From assembly GCA_977017575.1 (NCBI GenBank), contig CDRNVI010000011.1:248001-312000 (forward strand): DNA of 64,000 bases, written 5' to 3'. This DNA comes from Paramoeba atlantica (Eukaryota > Protista > Discosea). A program made the translations under genes and the position numbers. Positions 14,575 through 36,557 of this stretch are shown here, piece by piece. Below the pieces are notes generated by a model. It did no database searches and was not told where the DNA came from. It saw only the letters and a program-made list of their open reading frames with translations. How positions within the stretch are numbered: position 1 is the stretch's first letter; the number at the start of each line of letters is the position of its first letter.

Positions 14575-15428
14575 CCGTCACAAGCCTACTGTAAAGCACC
14601 CAAAACGGCTGGGAAATATCTGGCATTCTTTGTAAATCGGTAAAGACACTACTTTCCACTACGTCTTTTTTTGTATCTTTTTGAAACAGTGTTTCGGAAA
14701 ATCTAATTATATTTCGGAAAAGGCGAATTCTCCTTCACTTCACCCATGTCTTCAACATCCTCAGGATTGTGTACTTATTTTCCGATCAAGGGCTGTAGAA
14801 GTGTTGCTTCCTAATCACGGGCTGCTGAAGGAACCTTCTTGTACTCCGCATGGTCCAAGTATTATGCGGGACGTATCCGGACGATCAAAATGTGCTGTTT
14901 TCATGAATCCCAGCGCGACCCGAGTCGCATGAAACGAGGAAAGCTCGAACAAATAGACTAGACAAACACATTCTAGAGGCCATAGGTGTGCTGATGGGGG
15001 GGGGGTCAAGTGTGTTGGGGGGGACGGCTGGCCACCAAAATCCAAATCATTCCAGATTGCTCCGGACGGTCACTGGCAAGCCAGACCCTTCACAGACAGA
15101 TTTTGAAATTCCGAGGCCGACATCGTCTATCAGTTTCCACTTTTCCAAGGCGGCACCAACGTGATGTTGGTGTGTCTGTACCTTGTTGAAAAAATTACTT
15201 TTCACATAAGCAAATGTATCGGGTTTTCTGCGACGGGGGCCACTGTTTTGGGGAAAGGACATAAACTTTTTACGGTGACAAATACTAAACCGGGGGACGG
15301 AATAATATTAAGATGCGGTTTATTATTAAGTTGCGGTTTATTATTAAGTTAGACAAGTTATTATTAAGCTAGACAGGTTATTATTAAGCTGGACAAGTTA
15401 TTATTAAGTTGTCAAGTTATTATTAAGT

Positions 15429-17718
15429 TTGTGTTTTTCGATGGGAGAAGGAGATTTTTTCGCCGAAAGTTTGACCCTTCATAGATTGGCTCAGGCAGTG
15501 TGTGACCCAACCTACGTTCAGGAAAACGATGAGATTATGTCCCTTGAGGATGATGAAGGGGTAGAAATGCTTGATGACTCGTCGGACGTAATCGGTAGCG
15601 GAAGCGATGGAGAAAGTGAAAGTGCTAGCGAGAGCGAAAGTGAAAGCAATTGTGAAAGCGAATGTGAAAGTGTGAATTCAAGCGAAGAAGAAATAGGATA
15701 TAATGTTGAAAGTGCGAGCGAAAGTAAAATTAAGGGTAATTCAACTTCGGATGATGAAGATAACGGAGCGGAGCTGACTGTTGGAGGGAAAGACAAGAAC
15801 GAGCGCAAAAAACAACATTGCGTAGTATATACGGGGCGTCATATAGACCAGGGTGTGCGCGGTCGAGTGGAATCCACGGCTAGACAAAAGCGTGTAATAT
15901 ATGAGGTGGCGGAGTGGCAAGAACTCAAAGTTTGAAGCACATGGTGCTCAGACGGCGAGTTCAAACCCACTCATCGCAATATTCCTGGCGGCCTCACTCT
16001 AAGAGGCTGGGCTGAGAACCGACTAGGCCCAGTACTCGGAGGACCGTCCCGGACCCTCCCCTCAGGGAACCAGCTCCCTTACCCGGCTTACACCTCTTGG
16101 GTAAGCCGTGTTGACGTACAATTCGTCGACGCAGCGTGTTGGCAACAGCACGTTGGTGCCGCCTTGGACAAGCGGAAACTGGTAGAGAACGTCGGCCTCG
16201 GAACTTCCAAATCTGTCTGTGAAGGGTCTGGCTTGCCAGCGACCGTCTGGAGCAACCCGGAATGATTTGGATTTGGATGATTTGGACGGCTAGACAAAAG
16301 CGTGTAATATATCAGAAGTGGATTTCCTGGTCGCAACAAGATCGAGATGCTTATGGACCACTCCGCAAGTTAAACTCTTGGATCGACAAGCGATTCCCTA
16401 AGAAATGTGTCCACATTTTTAACAAAAAGCAAGTTATGGCATACTCTAATATTCCTAGGCATAGTCAAAAGCGTAAAAGGCATGTAAAGGGGCATAAACT
16501 GAAATGGTTAAAACAACAATTGCATTATTTTATTCTTGGATCTCGAGAGAACGATGCTTTGATAACAACCGAGATGGTGCGCCAAGAGGCATTTCGCATG
16601 CTGAAAAAGGAAAACCGCAAATCATCAGAGCAGAACAAAGCACGGGGGATTACAAGAGTAAGCGAACGTAGGATAGGGAGATTCCTCCACTCTTACAAAT
16701 GGTCTATAAGATTAGTAAAGAGATCAACTCAGCTATCAAGTGAAGAGATAAAGCAAAGAATTCATTCCTTTCATACGTTTGCCTATCGTTGTCTTAAAAC
16801 AAAAAAGTTTCGTTCCGTTCTGAATTTTGATGAAATTCCCATATCATTTCGCGGGTCCATGAAATCTTTAAAAACAATTGCACAGCGAGGAGAAGAAGAT
16901 GTACGAGGGCGTTGCAATCCGAATGATATGAAGCGATGCGCAACGCTTATCTGCGGTGCTGGCGTGAAACTGGACAAAAATGGAAGTCCAACGAGTCATT
17001 TCTTTCTAAAACCTTTTATCGTGTGGAAAGGAGCTGGAAAAGGATCTAGTCACGAGATATTTGATGCAAGGACGGCTCGAGCTTTTACTCCGAAAGGTGT
17101 CGTGAACAAAGATTTTTTTCTCCAAGACTTTATTTCCTTTCTCAAACGTGAACTGGATATAAATGACGCAGGCCACACTTTAATTTATCTAGACTCCTGC
17201 CGATCTCACATAACAAGTGACGTTCTCGATGCGTTTGCCACTGTGGCTAACTGCTAATGTGCCATATTACCCCCTGCAACAACATCCTGGATCCAATGGA
17301 TTGATGTATTTTATGCTTCGTGGACAAACGCGAGCAAGTAAACATTTGGCACAGAGAACAACATATCCGTCGGACCGCCCGCCAAAAGAGACAATGGATG
17401 CATAATGCCGTTGCCCGAGCGCACGAACAAGTTATAAACCTCGACAACGACTCTCTTGATGAATCAGGGACCCTTTCCTCTTCTATGAACGTTGTTCAAC
17501 AATTCAAAAGCTTGGGGTATATCGACCCTTGTGATGCATCGTGGTCGCATGTGAAATGTTTAGAAGGATATGTCTTTGTTCCACCAAGCGATGACGATGA
17601 GAGAGACGAAGCTAAGAGAATCGAAGATGCCTTTAAGCGTGGGAAAAGCGTCCAGGCACGAAAATCATTCCAAGGACGGCTCGATAAATGGTGTAACCCA
17701 CGACGCTCCACCGAATAA
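15429..17718 (+). pseudogene. pogo transposase pseudogene with acidic N-terminus
   Basis: ORFs 15429-15935 and 16262-17257 join in frame (TARQKRVIY) once the SINE and one TSD are removed; in-frame TAA at 17255; later frameshift. Confidence 0.85.
15903..16285 (+). mobile_element. full-length tRNA-headed SINE-B
   Basis: A box TGGCGGAGTGG (15907), B box GTTCAAACC (15959), (GATTTG)n tail, 27-bp TSD ACGGCTAGACAAAAGCGTGTAATATAT (15876-15902 / 16286-16312). Confidence 0.9.
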
Positions 17719-19732
17719 AGGTAAAGAAAAGAAAGATTTATGAAGTTTATGAAGTCGGGTAAAGATTCAGATAAAAAAAATATTCTTAAAGATTGCATAC
17801 ATAAAAAAACAATTTGTTAATTTTATTACAAACTTAATAATAACCCGCTGACAAGTTAATATTAAGTTTCACAACGTTGACAGGTTATTATTAAGTTTGA
17901 CAGGTTATTATTAAGTTGTCAAGTTATTATTAAGTTTCAACAACTTAATATTATTCCGTCCCCCGGTTTACAAGCGATCGGGCACTTACGCAAGTTTTTT
18001 GAGAAAAACTTGGTTCGGCGAGATAAAATACCCCATGATGAAGGGATGGCCAATTGACCCGATGGGCGCGAATCGGATCAATATTGAAAAATTACCTTGT
18101 TAAAAATTTACACAACACCATTTTACCCTGCGCCCCCTTCTTCGCTGCCTCTTTTCCCCCCTCCTGCGCTGACTTCGTCGCCCCCCCCTTTCGCCCCCCG
18201 CCCTCCCCGCCCACTGCTCTGCGCGTCCTTCGCCGCCCCGCTCACCACCAGCGCCGCCCTCCTGCCCCCCCTCCTGCGCGTCCTTCGCCGCCCCGCTTAC
18301 CCACCACCAGCGCCGCCCTCCTGGCCCCCCTCCTGCGCTCCTGCCCCCCCTTCACCCCCTGCTTCGCCGCCCCTTTCATCCCCCTTCGCCGCCCTTTTCG
18401 CCGCCCCTTCACCGCCCCCTTCGCCCTCTTCGCCCCCCCTTCTCCGTCCCCTTCTCCGCCCCCTTCTCCGCCCTTCGCCGACCCCCTCGTCGCCCCTTCG
18501 CCGCCCCCTTCGCCGACTTCTCTCACCGCCACTCTCTCCGTCGCGCTCCCCGCCGCGCTCTCCCGCCGCTGCACTCTCCCCCGCCCTTTCGATCTCCACC
18601 GCGCCTCTTTTCGCCGCCCTTCGGCGCCCCTATCTCCCATGTTGTGGAGCTACCCGGTGTCAGCACAACAAGACGTCAAGAAACTAGGGCAGTTTCCACG
18701 CAACAATTTAAGGCAGAGTAGTGGATTAACTTGTTAATCCACGCTGGGGGGTAGCGAACCCCTCCTGCCCTGGAGCTGTTAATTATTGACTTCCTTTCAT
18801 AGGAGGATAAGTCGGGTGTGTGCCCTCTATGGTTGAGATTACTCCTGTGTTGGTACAGATGCTTCGAGCATCAGCATCCGCACAGCGGACCTAGGCTGGA
18901 ACTAGGGGGCCATATCTCTTCGGAGACAAATGGCCCTGTGTATTACTACTACTACTACTCCAAACGTGATGTTACCAACACGTTGCGCTGACGAATAGTA
19001 CTTCAACACGGCTTACCAACCAGCCAACACTGGGAAAATTTCCCAGTTAATGGATTTACAATTTTCTTCTGAACATACACCCTTCCTCCTAACCGCGCGG
19101 GGCTAATTTACAGAAAATTTTTCAAAAACAAACAGACTTTGTATTTTATGGATCCTAATCATTCGATCCCTATGACACCTCAGTACTTAGCTTTCGTTTG
19201 CTGTGTAAGGCACTTACCGATGTGAGCACGACAGCAAACGGGTTAGTTCTCATCTGTATTCTGAATCATGCAGCGATACAAAGAAATTATTGGAACTAAA
19301 TTGCACCTCCTTAAAGTCGTGTTAATCCCAGAAATTAACACGACTTTTGTTGACATAACTTAATTTCCCCCCTGCATTCGATCTCGAACTTAACAATACC
19401 TGCGTTGTTTTCGTAGTCTTATGACGACCTTCTTTGAGTTTTTCACCTGTTGAAACTTTGGTATCTTCCTCTCCTGTATCTTTTAACCTCTTCTTTTGCG
19501 GATGATTCGAACGCGCTTTTACTAGTATATTTGTATTAGGTCGAGCTGTTCGTGGAGGCTCTGGGGCAGAATCTTTGTTTTTCTGCTTTTTCGTATTTAA
19601 CACAGTTGAGGTCATGTTGCGCGTCGAATTCCTAGATCGTTTGACGGTATGTTGATCACTGCTTTCCTGATTATCGTTTTTCTTATACGTATTATCGTTT
19701 AATATCTTATCGTTAATATCTTATCGTTTTTC

Positions 19733-20573
19733 TTATATGTATTTTTGACAGTTTCCGCGTATTTTGGATTTTGCAGACAGCGGTTCCTTGAACGTTTTTT
19801 CAGTTGGCTGAGATTGTTCTGTATTGGTACCTTGTCGCTTACGCTGAGTTTTAGCTAAGCGGGGACCCAGGTTTTGACCCGTCTTTCTTTTCCCTTCCAG
19901 AAACAGCACGTCTCCCAAATACTTAACAGAAAGCTCGTGTTTTGCTAGCTCAAAAGCCTCTTTCGCCATGGAGTCGGCTGTGTCGTTGTATGAATTTTCG
20001 TTATGGGATTTTACTTTTACGCAATAAAAATTTCTGTTGGTCTTAATGTAAAAGTAAGCATCTTTTAGCAATTCCATTGTCTTACCGTCTTCGAAGGATT
20101 GGTAACCTATGAGCCTATACATGTATCTGTGAACAATTTCGTTAAAGAATTCCCATATATTCAAAATTTGTGTGTAAGATGACGTCTCCCTCGTACGATT
20201 GTGCACCTTTTATGGCCTCAATTGCTGCATATGATTCGATCGATTGAATTGAGCTGGAATATTCTAGAGGAGGTTTCATCCCCTTAAACTGTGTGCGCTC
20301 GCTTCCTCTCAGAATTACGATGCCGCATCCCTGGAGTTGTTGATTCTTTTTGTAAATAAGCCACCCGTCAGTGTAAATATGTGTTTCATTCTCTCTGATG
20401 GGAAACGCTGTTTTTCCTTCTTCGATGAATTGTAATTCCTTGTATCCGACCTGACGAGCAATTGACATATGATAGCATTTGCCCCAAGACGGCTGCCGCA
20501 AAGGGACTGAAATCGCCGATCCACGAGTTTGCGCTTTGTCTGGCACCTCGTTTTCGTGAGAATCAGCAGTCAT
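19733..20573 (-). pseudogene. LINE RNase H region, degenerate
   Basis: ETHIYTDG, ESYAAIEAI, YCVKVKSHNENSYNDTAD across frameshifts; a second RNase H relic lies on + at ~21640-22130. Confidence 0.75.
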
Positions 20574-22829
20574 TGAATGGATGAAGGGAACTAAGCATAA
20601 CGTTTCAATGATTTCCGTAAATGAAAATATTAGAAATTTACACCACTTTTACTCAACCTTTTTGGTCAAAAAAATGGTCAGTTTTTTTTCGGACAACTCT
20701 TTTCGTCATTTTTCAAAACGGCACTATAAGTGATGCGGCACTATAAGTTCACCGCGTCACTAAGAGCGGGGGGCCAAAGTATCTTTTGTCGAGTTTACCC
20801 TCGAGTCCTAACAAACTAAGGTAAAACTATGAATAATTCGGGTACTTCTCTACCTCTTTGATTAATCAACAGAGTGGCTGCCACTTCGTCGATGAATAAG
20901 CGAATAGGAAATTAAAAATACGCAATCCTGCGGAAGTGGCAGACATAGGTCCTCAGTGCACGACCCGCGCGCTGGAGCGCGCGAGTCGCCAAAAAATATA
21001 ATTATGTCCCAGGGCTACGCTCACAGTTGGGCCTTGCTCGCAAACGGGGACTTTTACCTCCAGAAGTCCAATCCAATCCAAAAAGGCCGATTTACATTGG
21101 CTGATAAAACTACTATTTTGTTTTTCGTGAAGACACCTTCCTCTTAGGTGAATCTTCCCTCTCATTATCCACCTTTTAGAGAAGCACTCTTGATTGTTCA
21201 TAACTTTTATCTTTTTCAACATTATGAGCATCACTCTCTTCGGACGATTTTACTCCAGTACTAGTGGGAAGTAATGTGCCCCTGTTGTTGACCGGTTCTC
21301 CCCCAGTGTTAGATATCTTGCGTTTGTTTTTGGCAACACGTTGAACATTAGCTTTTGGACGTAATATGCCCTTCTTTTGGGGAGAGTCTACAAGCTCCTC
21401 CGTATTCTTATTTAACGTTTTCTTCCTCCTAATTTATAGGGAAGGAACAGGCTTACCAGAGCAAGTGCTAACGCATCCGCTTTTTCATTGTGGGGATTAC
21501 CATTGTGTGATTTCACCTTACTCGCATAACTTTTTATATTCTTAGCTTGTAGGGAACGAATCTCAAAATCAAGGTCTTTTAATACCTTTTCATTTTGTAC
21601 TTTCTCATCCGGAACTAGACCGCCAACACAAGCTTCCCACTCAGCACCTGCAGTAGAAGCCTATGCGGCAATCGAGGCTCTTAATCAAGCGAATTATTAT
21701 GGCAACGACATCTTCCTACATACTGATTCTGAATACATATGGAATTTTTTCCACAACGTCATGCAAATATATCGTCTCATCGGGTTCTTAGCTTTTGAGG
21801 GAAACGAACTTCTTACACAGCTTCAGAAAACATATTCGAGCATTCGAGTTACTAAAAGGATTTTTTGTGTCAAAGTAAAAGCGCACAACGAAAATCCCTA
21901 CAATGACAGTGCGGATTCCCTGACAATTTAGTAGCACTTCGTCCTGCTAAATGTTTAAGATAGCGTTATAAAACACGAACTACAGAAGAAATTTCGTCGC
22001 AGGAACAAAAAAATAAGCACAACATTGTCCGGCCATCAAAGGACAATGCATCCTCGGGCAAGCGCTCAAGAAACGTACGACCGGAAGAAACGCAGAAAAA
22101 GCAAAAAGATTTACGCAGCGAGGGAAGAAAACCATGCACACTTCAAGACAAGACTGATAAAGCATTGAAGGAAAGATTTCCGCAAATAAAAAGGTCCCAT
22201 TCGTCAAGCGAAATCCATGATAACACCAATCATAAAGTTCTGAAATCAAAATTGGTAACTACACGCAAGTTGTCTACGAATGAAAAAGGTGGATCATCAT
22301 CAAAATGCACGGTGAAAGGGGAAAAGAAAAAAGGGGGAAAGAAGAAAGAAGTCCTACATAAAACGAGAGCTAATGAATCTGAAGAAAGCAGTGATAGGGT
22401 GCCTTAACAAAATATAATTGTATCTGGGCTCACTTATTGGAAAGTGTGGAAATGTTTCGTTGATGCTGTCGTGATTGCTACGGTTTAAAACCGGATATTT
22501 TAGCTGAGTACTAAAGTTCAATACTCACATACAATTGATGAGGAATTATGAAATTTTCAAAATGAGACGTTGTTTGAAAAGTTTCCGTAAAGAAATCGGG
22601 GCCAGAAGCGGAAAGAACTATACTATTTTTGATAAAACTGTAAAACTCTTAACTGAAGGAAACTTCAGTTACGGGTGCATCTATGTAAATATGAGCTTCT
22701 TTATCTTTAATAGGGAATGAGTCGCTACCTTCTTCCAAGAATTGTAAATCACATAAGTTTTCCTTTTCGACGCCACGCTTATAGAGACTTCCATTGTGAT
22801 GTTATAACGCGAGTATTATTCGGCAGTGG

Positions 22830-24080
22830 TCCTAGTGTTTGCTGCAAACTATAGCAGAGTGCGCCAGTGATCGCGATCTTGGGGGTATACTAAGGTCTCT
22901 TCCAGAGTTATCCCTAAGTCTCTAATGCATGCCTCAGCTGGTGACATAGTGCGTGGTGTTTCTCGGCATTTCCATTTTAGAAGGTGCTGAAAAGTCGGGG
23001 AATGTCAGAGGGTATGGCCAACAAGCTTTACGCGGCTCACGTGGTGCACGGTTGAGAATCGTGGCGTTCCAAAATACAGAGACTCCAGTGGGTAACAGTG
23101 CCCAAGTTCGTCCAGCTTCGCGCATTGACAAGCGAATCTCCGCATCATATTGATTTCAACCTCAATTGAGCGAACCATGTAATTGGGAATCGTTATAGCA
23201 GCTGCTCCAAATGTGAGTACGGGGTATACCAGGCAGTCAAATAATGGCAATTTTGTCGCCACGCTCAGTGGTGATTCCCAAATGCCCTTGAGTTTCCGAA
23301 ACCCTGCCCACGTTAGTCGGAGCCTATCTTTCACAGAAGAGGAATAGTTGGACGCATCTTGCATATTCCCTAAATAACGGTATTTGTCGACATATGGAAT
23401 CTTGCCGAATGAGTTACTACGTAGATCGCGCGTCCCACCAGGAATTTTTCCAAAAGCCAACCAAACAGTTTTATTCTGGCCAACGGCGATGTGTAAATTA
23501 GCTTGTTTCGCTTCGTGTGCGGTAGAGTCAATCATCTTTGACAGTTCACCCTTTGTGGGAGCCAGCAGGGCAATTTCATCAGCACAGTTAATAGCCCGCA
23601 ACCTCACCTCTTGGATTCCAGATTTATCTCTGGATGCTCGAGTCTTCGTTTCATTAAGCAACCGCTGAGCCCCTGCAGTCGATCGTTCTGATCGAAAACC
23701 AAATTGACTCCCGCGAAGCACTGATTCAATCGAAGGCCGAATGCGCTGCAATATCATCAGTTTGACTACGCTTTTGACAAGGCATATGGGGCGCCAATTG
23801 TTGATTTGAGTAAGATTACCCTTTTTCGGAATTGAAACTTGTAGCACGTTCTTCCAACAGCCGGGGGCAACACCAGTTTCGGAGACATTATTGATAAGAT
23901 CAGGGAGTGTGCGCCGTAATTTTCCGTGTTCCACCATCATAATAAGCACTTCGACGGGTATTTCATCAATTCCAAGGGCTTTGTTTCGTGCTAGCCTGGG
24001 GGCTCTAATCTGAAGCTCTTCTTCGGTAAACCATTCATCTCTTATTGGAATCAATGATTTCCTCGCCTCGTCAAATTCGA
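22830..24080 (-). pseudogene. RTE-like LINE RT fragment with internal deletion
   Basis: KALGIDEIP, IPKKGNLTQINNWRPICL, QFGFRSERST, then a jump to CADEIALL; QGD motif missing. Confidence 0.8.
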
Positions 24081-24224
24081 TGTCTCGGTTTCTCCGATCG
24101 TCGTTTCCTATGTTTGAAAAGAAATCGCAAACCACTTTAAAAGTGGTTATAAATTGGGACCCTATGGCCCCAATCCTCTTCGCCATCGGGATTCAAAGGG
24201 CGATTTCCAAGGTGGCAGCCAAGT

Positions 24225-25345: not shown

Positions 25346-26149
25346 TTGCGCCTAAACGCGGCCAAATGTAAAGTGGCCACGAGGGAGCACAACCTCTTCT
25401 CTGAGTTTTCCGGAATCAGAATGATTCACTCCCCGGGGGGAGTTAAACTTCTGGGGGCTTTCATTTGGGAGTCGGAGGACAGGGAGGAAGAATGGGTCCT
25501 ATATAAGACCTCCAAAGTGATCTCCTTCCCTGAGAAATTGAAAGCTCTCAACAGGCAATGTGCTCTGCCTCTCCTAAGGCTCTTTTGGAGCCCACGATGG
25601 AACGAGCCGGGTAAGGGAGCTGGTTCCCTGAGGGGAGGGTCCGGGACGGTCCTCCGAGTACTGGGCCTATTCGGTTATCAGCCCAGCCTCTTAGAGTGAG
25701 GCCGCCTGGAATATTGCGATGGGCGGGCACAACCTGTGTGAGTTTCATCCTTTTTAACGATTCGTGCTCCATTTGTATAAATGTGGGTTTCATTTGGCCC
25801 GATTGGAAATCGTTGCCGCCCTTCTTCAATGCATTGTAGGGTTTCGTAGAACACCTTGTTTACCTCCTTTAGAAAAAGATTTCCATTGTTTTGAAGTTGT
25901 TTTAGTGTACGAGGTCCTGGGTTCAAGCTGGTGTTGAGGATTCTTGCGTATTGATGAAATAGTGTCAACATTCCTTCTTGGACGCAATATGAGTGTCACT
26001 TCTGGCGAGGATATGGGGTCAGAAGAAGAAGAAGGAGCCTTTGTCGTCTTCAACCTCTTTGCCGCTTGTGATTTTAACGGCCTTCGTTACGCCGAGAGAG
26101 CCAAGACATCAGCTTTGTCGCTATATTCGTTCCCATTATGAGATTTAAC

Positions 26150-26190
26150 GATAAAGATGCAATTTCTGTACCTTGTTGGTATGAGAAGCT
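26150..26190 (+). ncRNA. spliced-leader RNA fragment (exon 3' part plus first 12 nt of intron), not a full gene
   Basis: (TAAC)GATAAAGATGCAATTTCTGTACCTTGTTG|GTATGAGAAGCT resembles the kinetoplastid SL exon (...CAGTTTCTGTACTWTATTG) and the conserved intron start GTATGAGAAGCT. Confidence 0.85.
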
Positions 26191-26197
26191 AAAAAGG

Positions 26198-27011
26198 GGC
26201 GGAGGGGCAAGAATTCAAAGTTTGAAGCACATGGTGCTCAGACGGCGAGTTCAAACCCGCGGTGCGGGCGTAGTTGTTAGACGGTGGGCCTTACAACCTG
26301 CAGGTTGTGGGTTCGATTCCCGCTATCGACAAAACTCGCAACCTGGCGGCCTCACTACAAAGGGAAAGCGATCAGGAGTGCCTTCAAGGCCCACACCCAA
26401 ACCCGCCCCCCTGGAGGACCGACCCGGAACCGCCGAGCTGAACCAGGCCCCAGCGCAGCCGCTAAATTGGGAGATGCTTACGCAAAGGAGGCTTGAGACA
26501 CAGCCTACACGATGCAACGGGGTGGACGCCCGTCCTGGTAGCTACGGTTGGGTAGCCGTGCTCGGGCCGCAAGGCGTCGAGTGCCGTCTGGGAAGGGGGT
26601 AGCAACACGATGAAGGTCGGTGACCTGAGACTCTACCCTAACGGTTGGCGCTGCAGAGCCCTCCGTGTCTTCTTCTTCTTCTTCTTCTTCTTCTTCAAAC
26701 CCGCTCATCGCAATATTCCCGGCGGCCTCACTCTAAGAGGCTGGGCTGAGAACCAACTAGGCCAAGTACTCGGAGGATCGTCCCGGACCCCCCCCTCAGG
26801 GAACCAGCTCCCTTACCCGGCTTAAAACTCTTGGGTAAGCCGTGTTGACGTACAATTCGTCGACGCAGCGTGTTGGCAACAGCACGTTGGTTCCGCCTTG
26901 GACAAGCGGAAACTGGTAGAGGACGTCGGCCTCGGAACTTCCAAATCTGTCTGTGAAGGGCCTGGCTTGCCAGTGACCATCCGGAGCGATCCGGAATGAT
27001 TTGGATTTGGG
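26198..27011 (+). mobile_element. SINE-B copy containing nested SINE-A
   Basis: Head 26198-26260, resumes at 26694; 15-bp TSD ATTATGAGATTTAAC (26135-26149 / 27012-27026). Confidence 0.9.
26261..26693 (+). mobile_element. tRNA-headed SINE-A
   Basis: tRNA(Val)-like head with B box GGTTCGATTCC (26310), (TTC)n tail, TSD TTCAAACCCGC (26250-26260 / 26694-26704). Confidence 0.9.
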
Positions 27012-27026
27012 ATTATGAGATTTAAC

Positions 27027-27470
27027 TTTGCACACATACAAATTAACATTCTGAGATTTTAGTTTCCGCACCTGATGACCTATATCTTGTACAATGTTTC
27101 TGTTGACGCTGCCGTCATACCCTATTACCCGTCTCCGAATGCGAACATGATGAAAGAAGTGCCACGCATAGAACGAATCTGTGTGTACTACGATATCTTT
27201 TGCTCCGCCCGGTATTCTTTTAAGCGCCTCTCGGAAAGATTCAGCCTCAGCTTGCTCGGCACTATCAACATCTAGTGTTAAGGAAAAACATTTATCGGTT
27301 GTCCACCGTTGAAGCACAACAATTCCAGCACCTGCTCTGATCTCGTTTGTCATCCGCAAGGCACGGACTGAACCATCAATATAGAAGTGAACCTCACCAT
27401 CTTTTACTGGAAGGATCAGAACTTTCTTCGACAAATTGGAAATCGTAAGGCGTATCTTGATTCAAGGCGT
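27027..27470 (-). pseudogene. LINE RNase H domain split by the SL-SINE insertion (continues at 26134 leftwards)
   Basis: FYIDGSV, EAESF, VHTDSFY, then CKVKSHN|GNEYSDKAD rejoined across the TSD. Confidence 0.85.
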
Positions 27471-27698
27471 AGGCATGTTTACTTTTCCATCTAGGAGAAG
27501 AGAGTCTTTCGTAATCCGGGAGCGGTTCGAGTGCTACGTGTATGACCCTCGCTTGGCCGAACGAACGGCGAAGAATACAATGTCAAAGCGCTTGGTCCGC
27601 CACCGGAAAGTAGACGGCGAAGTAATTGGACTAGTGACCAGCCTTCTGGAACGGCGATACAGCCCGCAACGGATTAGTGTCACCCTAAATAAGGAGCA

Positions 27699-28643: not shown

Positions 28644-30521
28644 GTGGAGTTGGCGGAGTGGCAAGAACTCAAAGTTTGAAGCACATGGTGCTCAGACGGC
28701 GAGTTCAAACCCGCTCATCGCAATATTCCCGGCGGCCTCACTCTAAGAGGCTGGGCTGATAACCAACTAGGCCCAGTACACACACACACAAACACACACA
28801 CACACACACACACACACAACACTGAAGGCATTACCCTTCAGTTGAGAAACTGTTAAAGCTTCACTAAATATATGCTCCTAAAGCTAGAACTAATAGAATT
28901 TGATACCCACACCATCGTGCGCCCTATTGGTAGATATATTTTTCCATTACTCTCGTTTTGAGTACACCCCTGAGTTTACAGGTTGGATGTTCGGAAATGT
29001 TTCTTTTCGCTTTGTTCAAATTCTGCGTTAGCAAGCGAAGACGCGGTGTCTAGTAACTTACCTTTTCTCTTACGCCGCATCCGACGCTCCTCACGGGTTG
29101 GGTTCGTGGTTTTCTTTTCTAATGTTTTAAGGCACGCTATCCACACATATTCGGAGTGGGCCGATTCATTTCCTCGGTTCAGGTTTTTTCTTCGTTTAGA
29201 AATAGGTTCCGAACTAACGAGCTTTTTACTTAAGGTATCCGCTTCTTCATTCCATTTATTCCCACAATGGCCTCGGACCGTAATAAAGGTGATGGTTCTC
29301 CCCTGACAATGCGCTGATCGAATAAAACTATCCAGAAAACTAAGCAGATCGGAATTCGAGACTTCAAAACCAACCAGTCGATCTTTCCTTCGGCGCATAT
29401 TTACAAAATTCCACACATAATACGAATCTGTGTGTACAACAACATTTTCAACTTCTTTTAGTTTACTCAAACCAAATAGGGCAGCGTGAATTTCGGCTCT
29501 TTCAGGAGATTTGGTTTCCAGGTAGGATAGGGAGGACGAAAAACTTTCATGCTTCTCTGCGTTTACTATTACACATCCAACTGCTACCTTTACCCTTGTG
29601 TCCGTATCATCGGAGATAGAAGCATCCACGTACGCATGCATTTCCTCCGGTTTTACAGGAAAAGGGGTTTCCCCTTCTTCGATAAATTGTAATTTATTAC
29701 ACACTGTTTCTTTTAAAGCGTTTTTGTATGCTAGTTTCCATTTAGGACTTTTGTAGCCAATATAAGACTCTGAGGGCTCGAGTCTCTCTGAGAGGTTTTC
29801 AATTAATTTGGCCCAGTGTGCGCTATCAGAGGCATATACAAGCATTTCTTCCATCTCAATCCCAAGGTCTTGTGCGCATGCTTCGGAAGGCGATGGAAAT
29901 CTCGCCTTTTCCCGGGAGCCCCATCCTACTAAAGAGCGGTAGATCTCAGAGTGCCTAATTTGGTGACCCACAAGGCGCGCCCGATTAATACGATGTATTG
30001 TATTGAAATGTAGCGTGTTGCGGTACAGAGATTCAATAGGATAACAATGCCCATTCTCATCAACTCCTACGGCGTCACACACGATGCGCCTCATGTTGTT
30101 TACTTGTACTTCAACGTTTCTCACCTGCGATGCCGATATCACCATGGATGACGTACCGTAGTTTAGTATGGGATAGACAAGGGTGTCAAAAATTCGAAGC
30201 TTAGCCTTTACGCGAAGAGGCGAGATCCAAATACCTCGTAGTTTGCTAAGACACGCCCACGCCAAACTCGCCCAGTACTCGGAGGATCGTCCCGGACCCT
30301 CCCCTCAAGGAACCAGCTCCCTTACCCGGCTTAAAACTCTTGGGTAAGCCGTGTTGACGTACAGTTCGTCGACGCAGCGTGTTGGCAACAGCACGTTGTT
30401 GCCGCCTTGGAAAAGCGGAAACTGGTAGAGGACGTCGGCCTCGGAACTTCCAAATCTGTCTGTGAAGGGTCTGGCTTGCCAGTGACCATCCGGAGCGATC
30501 CGGAATGATTTGGATTTGGAT
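28644..30521 (+). mobile_element. SINE-B split by a LINE (halves 28644-28779 and 30270-30521)
   Basis: Own TSD AGTGACGAG (28635-28643 / 30522-30530) inside an older LINE RT relic (LDSSL|SAATKLRLFD). Confidence 0.85.
28780..30269 (-). mobile_element. 5'-truncated LINE of the (GT)n-tail family (RT C-terminus plus RNase H; ORF 28976-30265)
   Basis: TSD GCCCAGTAC (28771-28779 / 30270-30278); HAYVDAS, ERAEIHAA, VHTDSYY, RGHCGNKWNEEAD; 3' hairpin ACTGAAGG/CCTTCAGT then (GT)n. Confidence 0.9.
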
Positions 30522-30949: not shown

Positions 30950-32211
30950 AAGGGAGTCGATAAAAAAATTCAACTGAGGACGAGAGGCCCGATTTTTTAG
31001 TCTCAAAACGAAACTCAGTTTTTTATCCCCCTTTTTGTCGAGGGGCAAGGGCCATTTTGCGGGGGTTTTAACATTGTTGTTGGTAGCGGGGTCTTCCTCT
31101 GTCGCAGAAAACCGAAAAAACCAACCAGGAGAAAAATGCAATAAATACACTTCCAAAGACCGATAAAGAAATGTTACCAAACGAACAAAAGAGATCCAGA
31201 TCTACAGGAGAAGCTCCAAAGAAACTGCGAAAGAGATCACAGAAACAGAAACTGCCAGCTTCAAAACTATCACCAGAATTTTCAACCCCCAAGAAGATGC
31301 AAACGAAACGAAAAATGCCAACTCAAGAGATCCAGGAGTTGGAATTATCTAAGGCTTCTGTAAAATATGAAGGAGAAAACAGTGAGTAACCCCCCCAGCC
31401 TCCCCCCACCCCATCTCCCCCCCCCGCCAGCATATTGTCCGATTTTATTTCTTTTCTTTTCTGCAAGATGCATTTCGTTTTTTATGTGTTTGATGTTGGT
31501 TTGGTTGAAAACTAATTTAGTATACCGTGAAGCTGGTGTACCGCTCGTCTCGCAATTTCAGGTAAGTTGTCTCAAACTAGCTAGGTAGTAACAGTAAAAC
31601 TAGCCACGCCCAGCTAGGAAGATAAAAAAAAAGCTAGGAAGATAATCACGGCTAATTAACCTAAGGCAACGTTGCGACGATAACCTAACCTAAGTGTGAA
31701 AATTAGTATGGCAAACAGTTTAACCTCCTTAAATGATCTATATCAGTGTTGTTGTTGTTCTTGAAAGAGTCCGTGCTAACCCCCTTGGTGCGACATCCGT
31801 CATTACGGATTGTGCCGATGATATCGGCTGTCGCATCGAGGGCTGTATCTCTGCTCCAACGAGCGCATGAACATCAAATTGTCGCAGCGACGACGACTTT
31901 CTGTACCTTGTTCATTTTATTATTAAATAAGACTTTTCATGGCAGCAGGGGGGAGCCCCCCCATACGTGGTTTGTCCCCCCAAACCACAGACGTGGTTTG
32001 TCCGCAAGCTCGGTGTATTCAGGCTCATGGTGGTACAGAAGTACCGCCTTCCCGATCGCATCAAGTTTAGGCAGTTCCTCTGCTCGGCCTAACGGATTAA
32101 ATTTTGCCACACTTTGGGTTGCAGGTGAGGAGGTAAATTTTGGTTCTTTCTCGTCCATCCGCTTTCTTAGTTCATACGTAGTTCATATGGGCAAAACCCC
32201 TCTTGTTGACT

Positions 32212-32812
32212 AAATCCAATACAAATCATTCCGGATTGCTCCAGACGGTCGCTGGCAAGCCAGACCCTTCACAGACAGATTTGGAAGTTCAGAGGCCGAC
32301 GTCCTCTACCAGTTTGCGCTTGCCCAAGGCGGAACCAACGTTCTATTGCCAACACGCTGCGTCGACGAACTCGAAGTGGCAAGAACTCGAAGTTTGAAGC
32401 ACATGGTGCTCAGATGGCGAGTTCAAACCCGCTCATCGCATTTTTCCTGGCGGCTTCACTCTCAGAGGCTGCGCTGAGAACATTCTGGGCCCAGTACTCC
32501 GAGGACCGTCCCGGACCCTCCGCTAAGGGAAACAGCTCCCTTACCCGGCTTACACCTCTTGGGTAAGCCGTGTTGATGTTCATTTGGTCGACGCATCGTG
32601 TTGTTAACAGCACGTTGGTGCCGCCTTGGAAAAGCGGAAACTGGCAGAGGACGTCGGCCTCGGAACTTCCAAATCTGTCTGTGAAGGGTCTGGCTTGCCA
32701 GTGACCGTCCGGAGCAATCCGGAATGATTTGGTTTTTTTTTTGGGGACTCCACCCTAGCGGCTAGCTCTGGAGAGCTATCCGTGTCTTCTTCTTCTTCTT
32801 CTTCTTCTTCTT
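32212..32812. mobile_element. head-to-head SINE-B pair: - strand 3' part (32212-32369) and + strand copy (32375-32732) with SINE-A-type tail
   Basis: Direct alignment to the 15903-16285 consensus; a further internal fragment lies at 32957-33102 (+) and another at 25605-25727 (-). Confidence 0.8.
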
Positions 32813-33457: not shown

Positions 33458-33881
33458 CCGCGGTGCGGGCGTAGTTGTTAGACGGTGGGCCTTACAACCT
33501 GCAGGTTGTGGGTTCGATTCCCGCTATCGACAAAACTCGCAACCTGGCGGCCTCACTACAAAGGGAAAGCGATCAGGAGTGCCTTCAAGGCCCACACCCA
33601 AACCCGCCCCCCTGGAGGACCGACCCGGAACCGCCGAGCTGAACCAGGCTCCAGCGCAGCCGCTAAATTGCGAGATGCTTACGCAAAGGAGGCTTGAGAC
33701 ACAGCCTACACGATGCGACGGGGTGGACGCCCGTCCTGGTAGCTACGGTTGGGTAGCCGTGCTCGGGCCGCAAGGCGTCGAGTGCCGTCTGGGAAGGGGG
33801 TAGCAACACGATGAAGGTCGGTGACCTGAGACTCTACCCTAACGGTTGGCGCTGCAGAGCCCTCCGTGTCTTCTTCTTCTG
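33458..33881 (+). mobile_element. SINE-A, second copy
   Basis: About 3 substitutions versus 26261-26693; TSD TTCAGAACA (33449-33457 / 33882-33890). Confidence 0.9.
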
Positions 33882-36180: not shown

Positions 36181-36557
36181 GAGGTGGCGGAGTGGCCAAG
36201 AATTCAAAGTTTGAAGCACATGGTGTTCAGACGGCGAGTTCAAACCCACTCATCGCAATATTCCCGGCGGCCTCACTCTAAGAGGCTGGGCTGATAACCG
36301 GCTAGGCCAAGTACTCGGAGGATCGTCCCGGACCCCCCCTCAGGGAACTAGCTCCCTTACCCGGCTTACACCTCTTGGGTAAGCCGTGTTGACGTACAAT
36401 TCGTCGACGCAGCGTGTTGGCAACAGCACGTTGGTGCCGCCTTGGACAAGCGGAAACTGGTAGAGAACGTCGGCCTCGGAACTTCCAAATCTGTCTGTAA
36501 AGGGTCTGGCTTGCCAGCGACCGTCTGGAGCAATCCGGAATGATTTGTATTGGATTT
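36181..36557 (+). mobile_element. full-length SINE-B
   Basis: Same GAGGTGGCGG start as 15903, A/B boxes and tail; no TSD found. Confidence 0.85.

Follow-up and report, generated by a model that had tools for sequence, protein, structure and literature searches.

A chimeric insertion joins a spliced-leader exon-intron fragment to a SINE within one target-site duplication in a euglenozoan genome

SLACS, CZAR and CRE of trypanosomatids are autonomous retrotransposons that reside in spliced-leader (SL) genes at a fixed exon site. SLACS-like reverse transcriptases have also been mentioned for Diplonema (PMC10161547). Chimeras of the snRNA/LINE/SINE kind, enclosed by one target-site duplication (TSD), have been described in mammals and in Magnaporthe (PMC4476161, PMC11838501, PMC2104539). 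The mammalian U6/L1 and other snRNA-LINE/SINE chimeras carry a copy of a spliceosome-related small nuclear RNA on the 5' side and a retroelement with its own end on the 3' side, in the same orientation and within one TSD, and are made during or just before target-primed reverse transcription (TPRT) (PMC4476161, PMC11838501). The WEIRD/Mg-SINE/MGL chimeras of Magnaporthe grisea, which include a SINE and are flanked by one short direct repeat, are ascribed to template jumps by a LINE reverse transcriptase, showing that the process exists outside mammals (PMC2104539). The dinoflagellate "relic SL" retrogenes contain a genomic SL copy at the 5' end of a retroposed sequence (PMC5585692, PMC12014239).

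Here we describe an 877-bp insert, found in a 64-kb stretch of DNA (hereafter the window), that consists from 5' to 3' of SL exon nucleotides 4-38, 12 nt of the SL intron, a short A run and a complete SINE-B (Table 1). It resembles the U6/L1 chimeras in its arrangement, in the shared orientation of its parts and in its single TSD, and it was probably also made during or just before TPRT. Unlike in U6/L1, the small RNA partner is an SL RNA of about 113 nt that is cut at nt 50, a full-length SINE takes the place of a 5'-truncated LINE on the 3' side, a short A run lies at the joint, and the host is a euglenozoan; the classic U6/L1 layout, with a complete small RNA 3' end and a 5'-truncated 3' partner, is therefore not what we observe. 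[quoted passage not shown] As in the relic SL retrogenes, a genomic SL copy heads a retroposed sequence; however, those relics contain the exon only, at the splice acceptor, while the exon-intron continuity of the present copy indicates that its template was never spliced. The locus shares with SLACS, CZAR and CRE a retroelement physically tied to SL RNA gene sequence in a euglenozoan, but in this case a 47-nt SL fragment has been carried together with a SINE into an unrelated LINE RNase H region. Our literature search, which is no proof of absence, did not find SL RNA as a partner in chimeric retrocopies.

Table 1 Features of the chimeric insert and its surroundings (window positions).
Feature	Coordinates	Strand	Evidence
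Host of the insertion: decayed LINE copy, RNase H domain struck	25940..27537	-	Pfam match; paralogous contigs
5' TSD copy	26135..26149	+	exact 15-mer twice in window; empty-site joint; SL gene alignment
SL exon nt 4-38	26144..26178	+	33/35 match with the L001 SL exon (L001:26-63:-)
SL intron, first 12 nt (GTATGAGAAGCT)	26179..26190	+	12/12 identical to L001:14-25:-
A-run linker	26191..26194	+	direct reading; absent from the SL gene and other SINE-B 5' ends
SINE-B head, A-box-like and B-box-like motifs	26195..26260	+	96.7% identical to other copies' heads; five-copy alignment
SINE-A, nested later insertion	26261..26693	+	99.3% identical to window 33458-33880
SINE-B body and 3' tail, ends in GATTTGG repeats	26694..27011	+	self-comparison; five-copy alignment
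3' TSD copy	27012..27026	+	exact 15-mer; empty-site joint
Other SINE-B copies in window	15903-16286; 28652-28779 and 30270-30519; 32372-32736; 36186-36556

The chimeric insertion is confirmed, in agreement with the original prediction of a chimeric retrocopy within one TSD. We read the region 25800-27400 directly for the insert anatomy and found that the 15-mer ATTATGAGATTTAAC, which bounds the insert as an exact 15-bp TSD, occurs exactly twice in the window, with 0 occurrences expected from shuffles. We then aligned Logan contigs from four runs of this organism over 25400-27600. In contigs of three runs, position 26134 is joined directly to 27012, skipping the 877 bases, and the 15 letters fit both sides. 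These contigs are ~5% diverged from the window flanks, indicating that they are paralogues of the flanking LINE that show the uninterrupted target; they cover 25940-26134 and 27012-27537. The ORF 26796-27434(-) gave a Pfam RNase_H match (E 1.1e-08), so the flanks encode a minus-strand RNase H domain and the target was a decayed LINE. The target of the insertion codes for a VKSHN motif in the minus-strand frame, and the insert has no coding capacity. A SLACS-like, SL-gene-specific element was accordingly rejected, since the insert is non-coding and did not land in an SL gene.

The SL part and SINE-B lie on the same strand within this one TSD; a second TSD around SINE-B alone is absent, while the TSD enclosing the whole chimera has an intact empty site in the paralogues. 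Two separate insertions were rejected on the ground of the single TSD around both parts. More broadly, we regard as very improbable that two abutting successive insertions, a chance SL resemblance or an assembly error produced this locus. The locus is a dense repeat nest and no read is shown across the junction: no contig of the organism's runs was shown spanning the SL/SINE junction, a run search with a 75-base junction, of which only four words were sampled, listed no run, and the other assembly contig that contains the SNAP gene of the window seems, from its coordinates, to end at ~15.5 kb of the window, before the locus. However, the 15-bp TSD encloses both parts and none surrounds the SINE alone, the SL match described below is not due to chance, and an assembler does not make TSD-flanked inserts with a paralogous empty site. 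Exact-protein look-ups of the junction-spanning ORFs 26138-26599 and 26799-27434, and of the neighbouring RT ORF 23008-24186, returned no record.

For the SL part, a metagenome scan with a 28-base query over the exon-intron boundary gave one contig, L001, whose minus strand reads ...GTAACTTTAACGATAAAGATACAGTTTCTGTACCTTGTTG/GTATGAGAAGCTTCGAACC... at the SL gene. Alignment of the SL gene to the SL segment, the check proposed in the original prediction, showed 45 of 47 aligned positions to be identical over 26144-26190, including all 12 intron bases, and the alignment stops exactly at intron nt 12; the chance expectation for such a match is 0. The insert thus contains an SL exon and an intron start, as predicted. 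Because identity to the SL gene extends through 12 intron bases and is lost at the point where the gene diverges, the template was unspliced SL RNA or its gene and not an mRNA, which upholds the earlier claim and removes a retrocopy of a trans-spliced mRNA (a relic SL) from consideration, as such a copy would not have 12/12 intron bases 3' of the exon. The segment was also rejected as an SL RNA gene, since only nt 4-50 are present and the flanks are the LINE RNase H region.

Both mismatches are transitions in the insert copy: an A of the real SL has become G at 26159, and a G has become A at 26162. The real SL therefore contains GATACAG, and the GATGCAA of the SL sequence reconstructed in the original prediction reflects changes of the insert copy. 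The predicted SL length of 36 nt also did not hold: the exon is 38 nt long and starts with AACTTTAACG instead of AACTAACG, a start that was set by analogy with AACTAACG and not by mapping. Contigs of the organism's runs that match 26146-26178 diverge past 26178 into varied mRNA-like sequence, indicating that the SL exon ends at 26178, and those that match through 26190 read on into TCGAACTC... or TCGAACTCTAAGTTCG... (TCGAAC...), which is the real intron. One contig from a run labelled "RNA?" gives GATACAGTTTCTGTACCTTGTTG, matching 26144-26178 with two other letters. The SL is of the kinetoplastid/diplonemid type in its ACAGTTTCTGTAC core, its ...TTG end and its GTATGAGAAGCT intron start, as compared with a published SL list (PMC3795323). 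The alpha-SNAP encoded in the window has its nearest Atlas cluster mostly in Euglenozoa, with relatives that are only ~31% identical in a word-based search, and the window genes are long ORFs without introns.

L001 contains a 5S rRNA gene (98 bits) at 0.4 kb from the SL gene, and its ends overlap by 7 bases, which suggests that L001:1-1785 is one 1778-bp SL RNA-5S rRNA tandem unit of a relative. Past nt 18, the L001 intron is unlike the one that the organism's contigs show, indicating that L001 derives from a relative or represents a variant gene. A long GC-rich stem-loop is present in the L001 intron (AGCCCCGGGTCCC...GGGACCTGGGGCT). No Rfam model recognises this SL RNA, L001 included, and ARAGORN found no tRNA in L001.

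At the 5' junction, SL nt 4-9 are identical to the last six target bases, TTTAAC (26144-26149). The original prediction of a TAAC microhomology with the canonical SL start was thus right in that a microhomology exists, but the real one is TTTAAC and 6 nt long; the insert lacks no more than the first three SL bases at its 5' end. Among the SINE-B copies of the window, this copy is the only one with extra 5' bases within its TSD (26150-26194). The A run comprises five A at 26191-26195, the fifth of which may be the first SINE base, and its four or five A can be traced to neither SL RNA nor SINE-B. Separately, contigs of three runs, including the RNA-like one, show at window position 26146 a sequence ...GGCATGTACACGG immediately 5' of TAACGATAAAG, which corresponds to SL nt 6 onward. 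This ...GGCATGTACACGG does not fit the SL 5' end and may be the end of an element inside an SL exon, and the element bearing it may be transcribed.

The window also contains SL relics without intron, at 749-761, 15176-15188 and 31898-31913. The second belongs to a ~3.8-kb element (15171-18963) that starts with GTGTGT and the last 13 SL exon bases, ends in (TAC)n, has the TSD AACGTGATGTT and sits in a minus-strand SINE-B-like tail. At the other two sites (745-761 and 31898-31913), 13-16 nt from the end of the SL exon abut other sequence with nothing in between. A C-rich repeat is headed by one of these relics; the other comes after a brief stretch of (GAC)n, suggestive of a tail that became attached to an RNA with the SL at its head.

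SINE-B is an abundant repeat of ~370 bp, of which ~20 other copies or fragments were observed, and the copy in the insert is complete. It begins 4-5 bases past 26190, essentially at its usual 5' end, differs by 2.7% from a five-copy consensus, and has its tail, the 3' end used by the LINE machinery, directly adjoining the TSD. The other SINE-B copies in the window start with (G)GAGGTGGCGGAGTGGCAAG, directly past their own TSDs where these are readable, without SL; readable TSDs in seven other SINE-B copies measure 9-26 bp. We also analyzed three loci from the assembly record ENA ERZ24900291, which encodes an alpha-SNAP identical to that of the window; the loci were chosen via ORFs crossing SINE-B heads. 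These loci, ~52 kb in total, contain 13 further SINE-B matches and no SL motif. The SL part is likewise missing from all three called ORFs that run across SINE-B heads at other places in the assembly, and both results indicate that the fusion does not represent a common subfamily. With the junction-crossing ORF as query, a protein-word search found only ordinary SINE-B heads.

The original prediction had listed SL, an A linker and SINE-B as the contents of the insert, all of which are present, but it overlooked the SINE-A nested in and splitting SINE-B. This 433-bp SINE-A contains a T-arm that is tRNA-like, ends in a (CTT)n tail (26669-26693) and is flanked by a TSD of 7-11 bp (TTCAAACCCGC, 26250-26260 and 26694-26704). 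At gathering scores Rfam found nothing in the window; at loose thresholds there were weak tRNA-like matches at 26273-26330, and all the matches in the window lie within the nested SINE-A. The clearer tRNA-like T-arm in the interval thus belongs to SINE-A and not to SINE-B. For SINE-B itself, the firm label "tRNA-derived" had to be withdrawn: ARAGORN called no tRNA in the window, SINE-B included, and the canonical SINE-B head had no Rfam match up to E = 10. By direct reading, SINE-B has an A-box-like motif, TGGCGGAGTGG, and a B-box-like motif, GAGTTCAAACC, and it can be called tRNA-like by these motifs only. The SINE-B head is predicted to fold stably (z = -4.7).

The last ~178 nt of SINE-B resemble DNA at 15035-15169 and 18963-19017 that lies past a LINE RNase H region on the minus strand. 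The region 18963-20600(-) comprises a LINE RNase H region and downstream sequence, which the SINE-B tail follows. The minus-strand LINE 18963-24186(-) is accordingly the only candidate for the partner LINE of SINE-B; we found no second copy linking the tail to the body, and no clear TSD. Two other LINEs, a full-length one in L005 and one with a (TG)n tail at 28780-30269, were rejected as partners, as both lack the SINE-B tail. The latter is a 5'-truncated minus-strand fragment with an RNase H domain, a (TG)n tail and the TSD GCCCAGTAC, and is nested inside another SINE-B copy. Several LINE and SINE families are found side by side here, distinguished by their microsatellite tails: (TG)n, (CTT)n, (TAC)n or GATTTGG repeats.

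The 5' ends of the other SINE-B copies bear on how the chimera was made. Among 11 full-length copies other than that of the insert, at least four have their 5'-terminal 8-20 bases reiterated and at least two have unrelated extra bases between the TSD and the head, indicating that the enzyme often keeps copying past the 5' end of the SINE-B template. The motif GGCGGAG(G)T is present two or three times before the SINE-B head at L003:13576-13655, and likewise on the minus strand at L005:12418-12497, L005:18733-18812 and L003:8429-8508. This reiteration suggests repeated short jumps at the template 5' end.

The SL RNA fold is the second source of information. Folding was predicted for the L001 SL RNA, taken as the exon and 75 further nt, and for the organism's own partial SL RNA; both gave the same hairpin of nt 21-50, with the exon AGUUUCU pairing with the intron AGAAGCU. 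In this hairpin, nt 21 pairs with nt 50, which is intron nt 12 and the final SL base in the chimera. According to this model, in which the boundary of stem-loop I is a thermodynamic prediction, the SL part would correspond to the 5' single-stranded region plus exactly stem-loop I. This is more in keeping with the end of an RNA than with a DNA break at a random position.

From these observations, we consider it somewhat probable that the insert is a dead, single-event chimeric retrocopy that arose by TPRT with a template jump from SINE-B RNA to a 3'-shortened SL RNA. The jump is favoured because the final SL base coincides exactly with the 3' base of stem-loop I and because other SINE-B copies often have reiterated or extra 5' bases. 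A SINE part that starts within a few bases of its usual 5' end is a prediction of an end-to-end jump, and two changes in 47 SL bases compared with 2.7% in the SINE give an age that fits a single event. Only one copy of the chimera was observed, and the order of events is thus not observable.

In the favoured sequence of events, a LINE reverse transcriptase would start TPRT on the 3' tail of SINE-B RNA at a nicked target inside an older LINE and copy this RNA through to its 5' end. From there the enzyme would jump end to end onto an unspliced SL RNA whose 3' side had been trimmed back to stem-loop I; the A run may be a short oligo(A) tail on the SL fragment or may have been added by the enzyme during the jump. 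The SL fragment would be copied to or near its capped 5' end, and the cDNA would be joined to the upstream target end through the 6-nt TTTAAC match, priming the second strand. The two SL transitions, the ~2.7% SINE change and the nested SINE-A would have been acquired later. Against this reading, the truncated or oligoadenylated SL RNA species is postulated, the A run has no proven source, and the classic U6 chimeras are the reverse, with a small RNA that is full to its 3' end and a 5'-truncated retroelement.

Both a template switch and a 5' transduction had been put forward in the original prediction, and both remain the main candidates, with the template jump favoured. In the transduction, SINE-B would have inserted after intron nt 12 of an SL gene or a dispersed SL-like unit, and a read-through RNA would have been retrotransposed via the SINE tail. 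The same layout is expected from this route, namely SL from near its start, intron, full SINE and one TSD, and hits in SL genes are plausible given the abundance of SINE-B in the extra loci. However, the 3' base of stem-loop I would then have been hit only by chance, at ~1-3 positions of a ~75-nt intron, the A run requires an extra event, and neither the window nor the 52 kb of extra loci contains a source locus or a sister copy. We therefore judge the transduction to be rather unlikely.

A joining of the two RNAs before reverse transcription, in which an RtcB-type ligase links a cleaved SL fragment to the 5' end of SINE-B RNA and the product is copied in one pass, seems improbable to us. Such ligation is a published route for U6/L1 chimeras (cited in PMC11838501) and would account for a full-length SINE in the same orientation as the SL part within one TSD; the sequence gives no distinction between it and a template jump. 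It leaves the four or five A between the partners unexplained, though, and requires a specific cleavage of the SL RNA after intron nt 12.

The chimera has no evident function and is a decayed insertion inside a dead LINE. It nevertheless adds a euglenozoan to the hosts, so far mammals and a fungus, in which the formation of chimeric retrocopies has been described, and introduces unspliced SL RNA as a new small-RNA partner. The exact stop at the stem-loop I base is a hint of a shortened SL RNA species. It is a long shot that a 3'-shortened SL RNA, consisting of stem-loop I and perhaps a short oligo(A), is a recurrent jump acceptor for the LINE reverse transcriptases of this genome; if so, part of the SL-headed retroelements would have obtained their SL by a jump and not by trans-splicing, and the chimeras would record an intermediate of SL RNA decay. 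The intron bases provide a clean marker that distinguishes copies derived from SL RNA from the much commoner copies of trans-spliced transcripts. Evidently, SINE mobilisation in this repeat-rich genome relies on enzymes that take up nuclear small RNAs as well.
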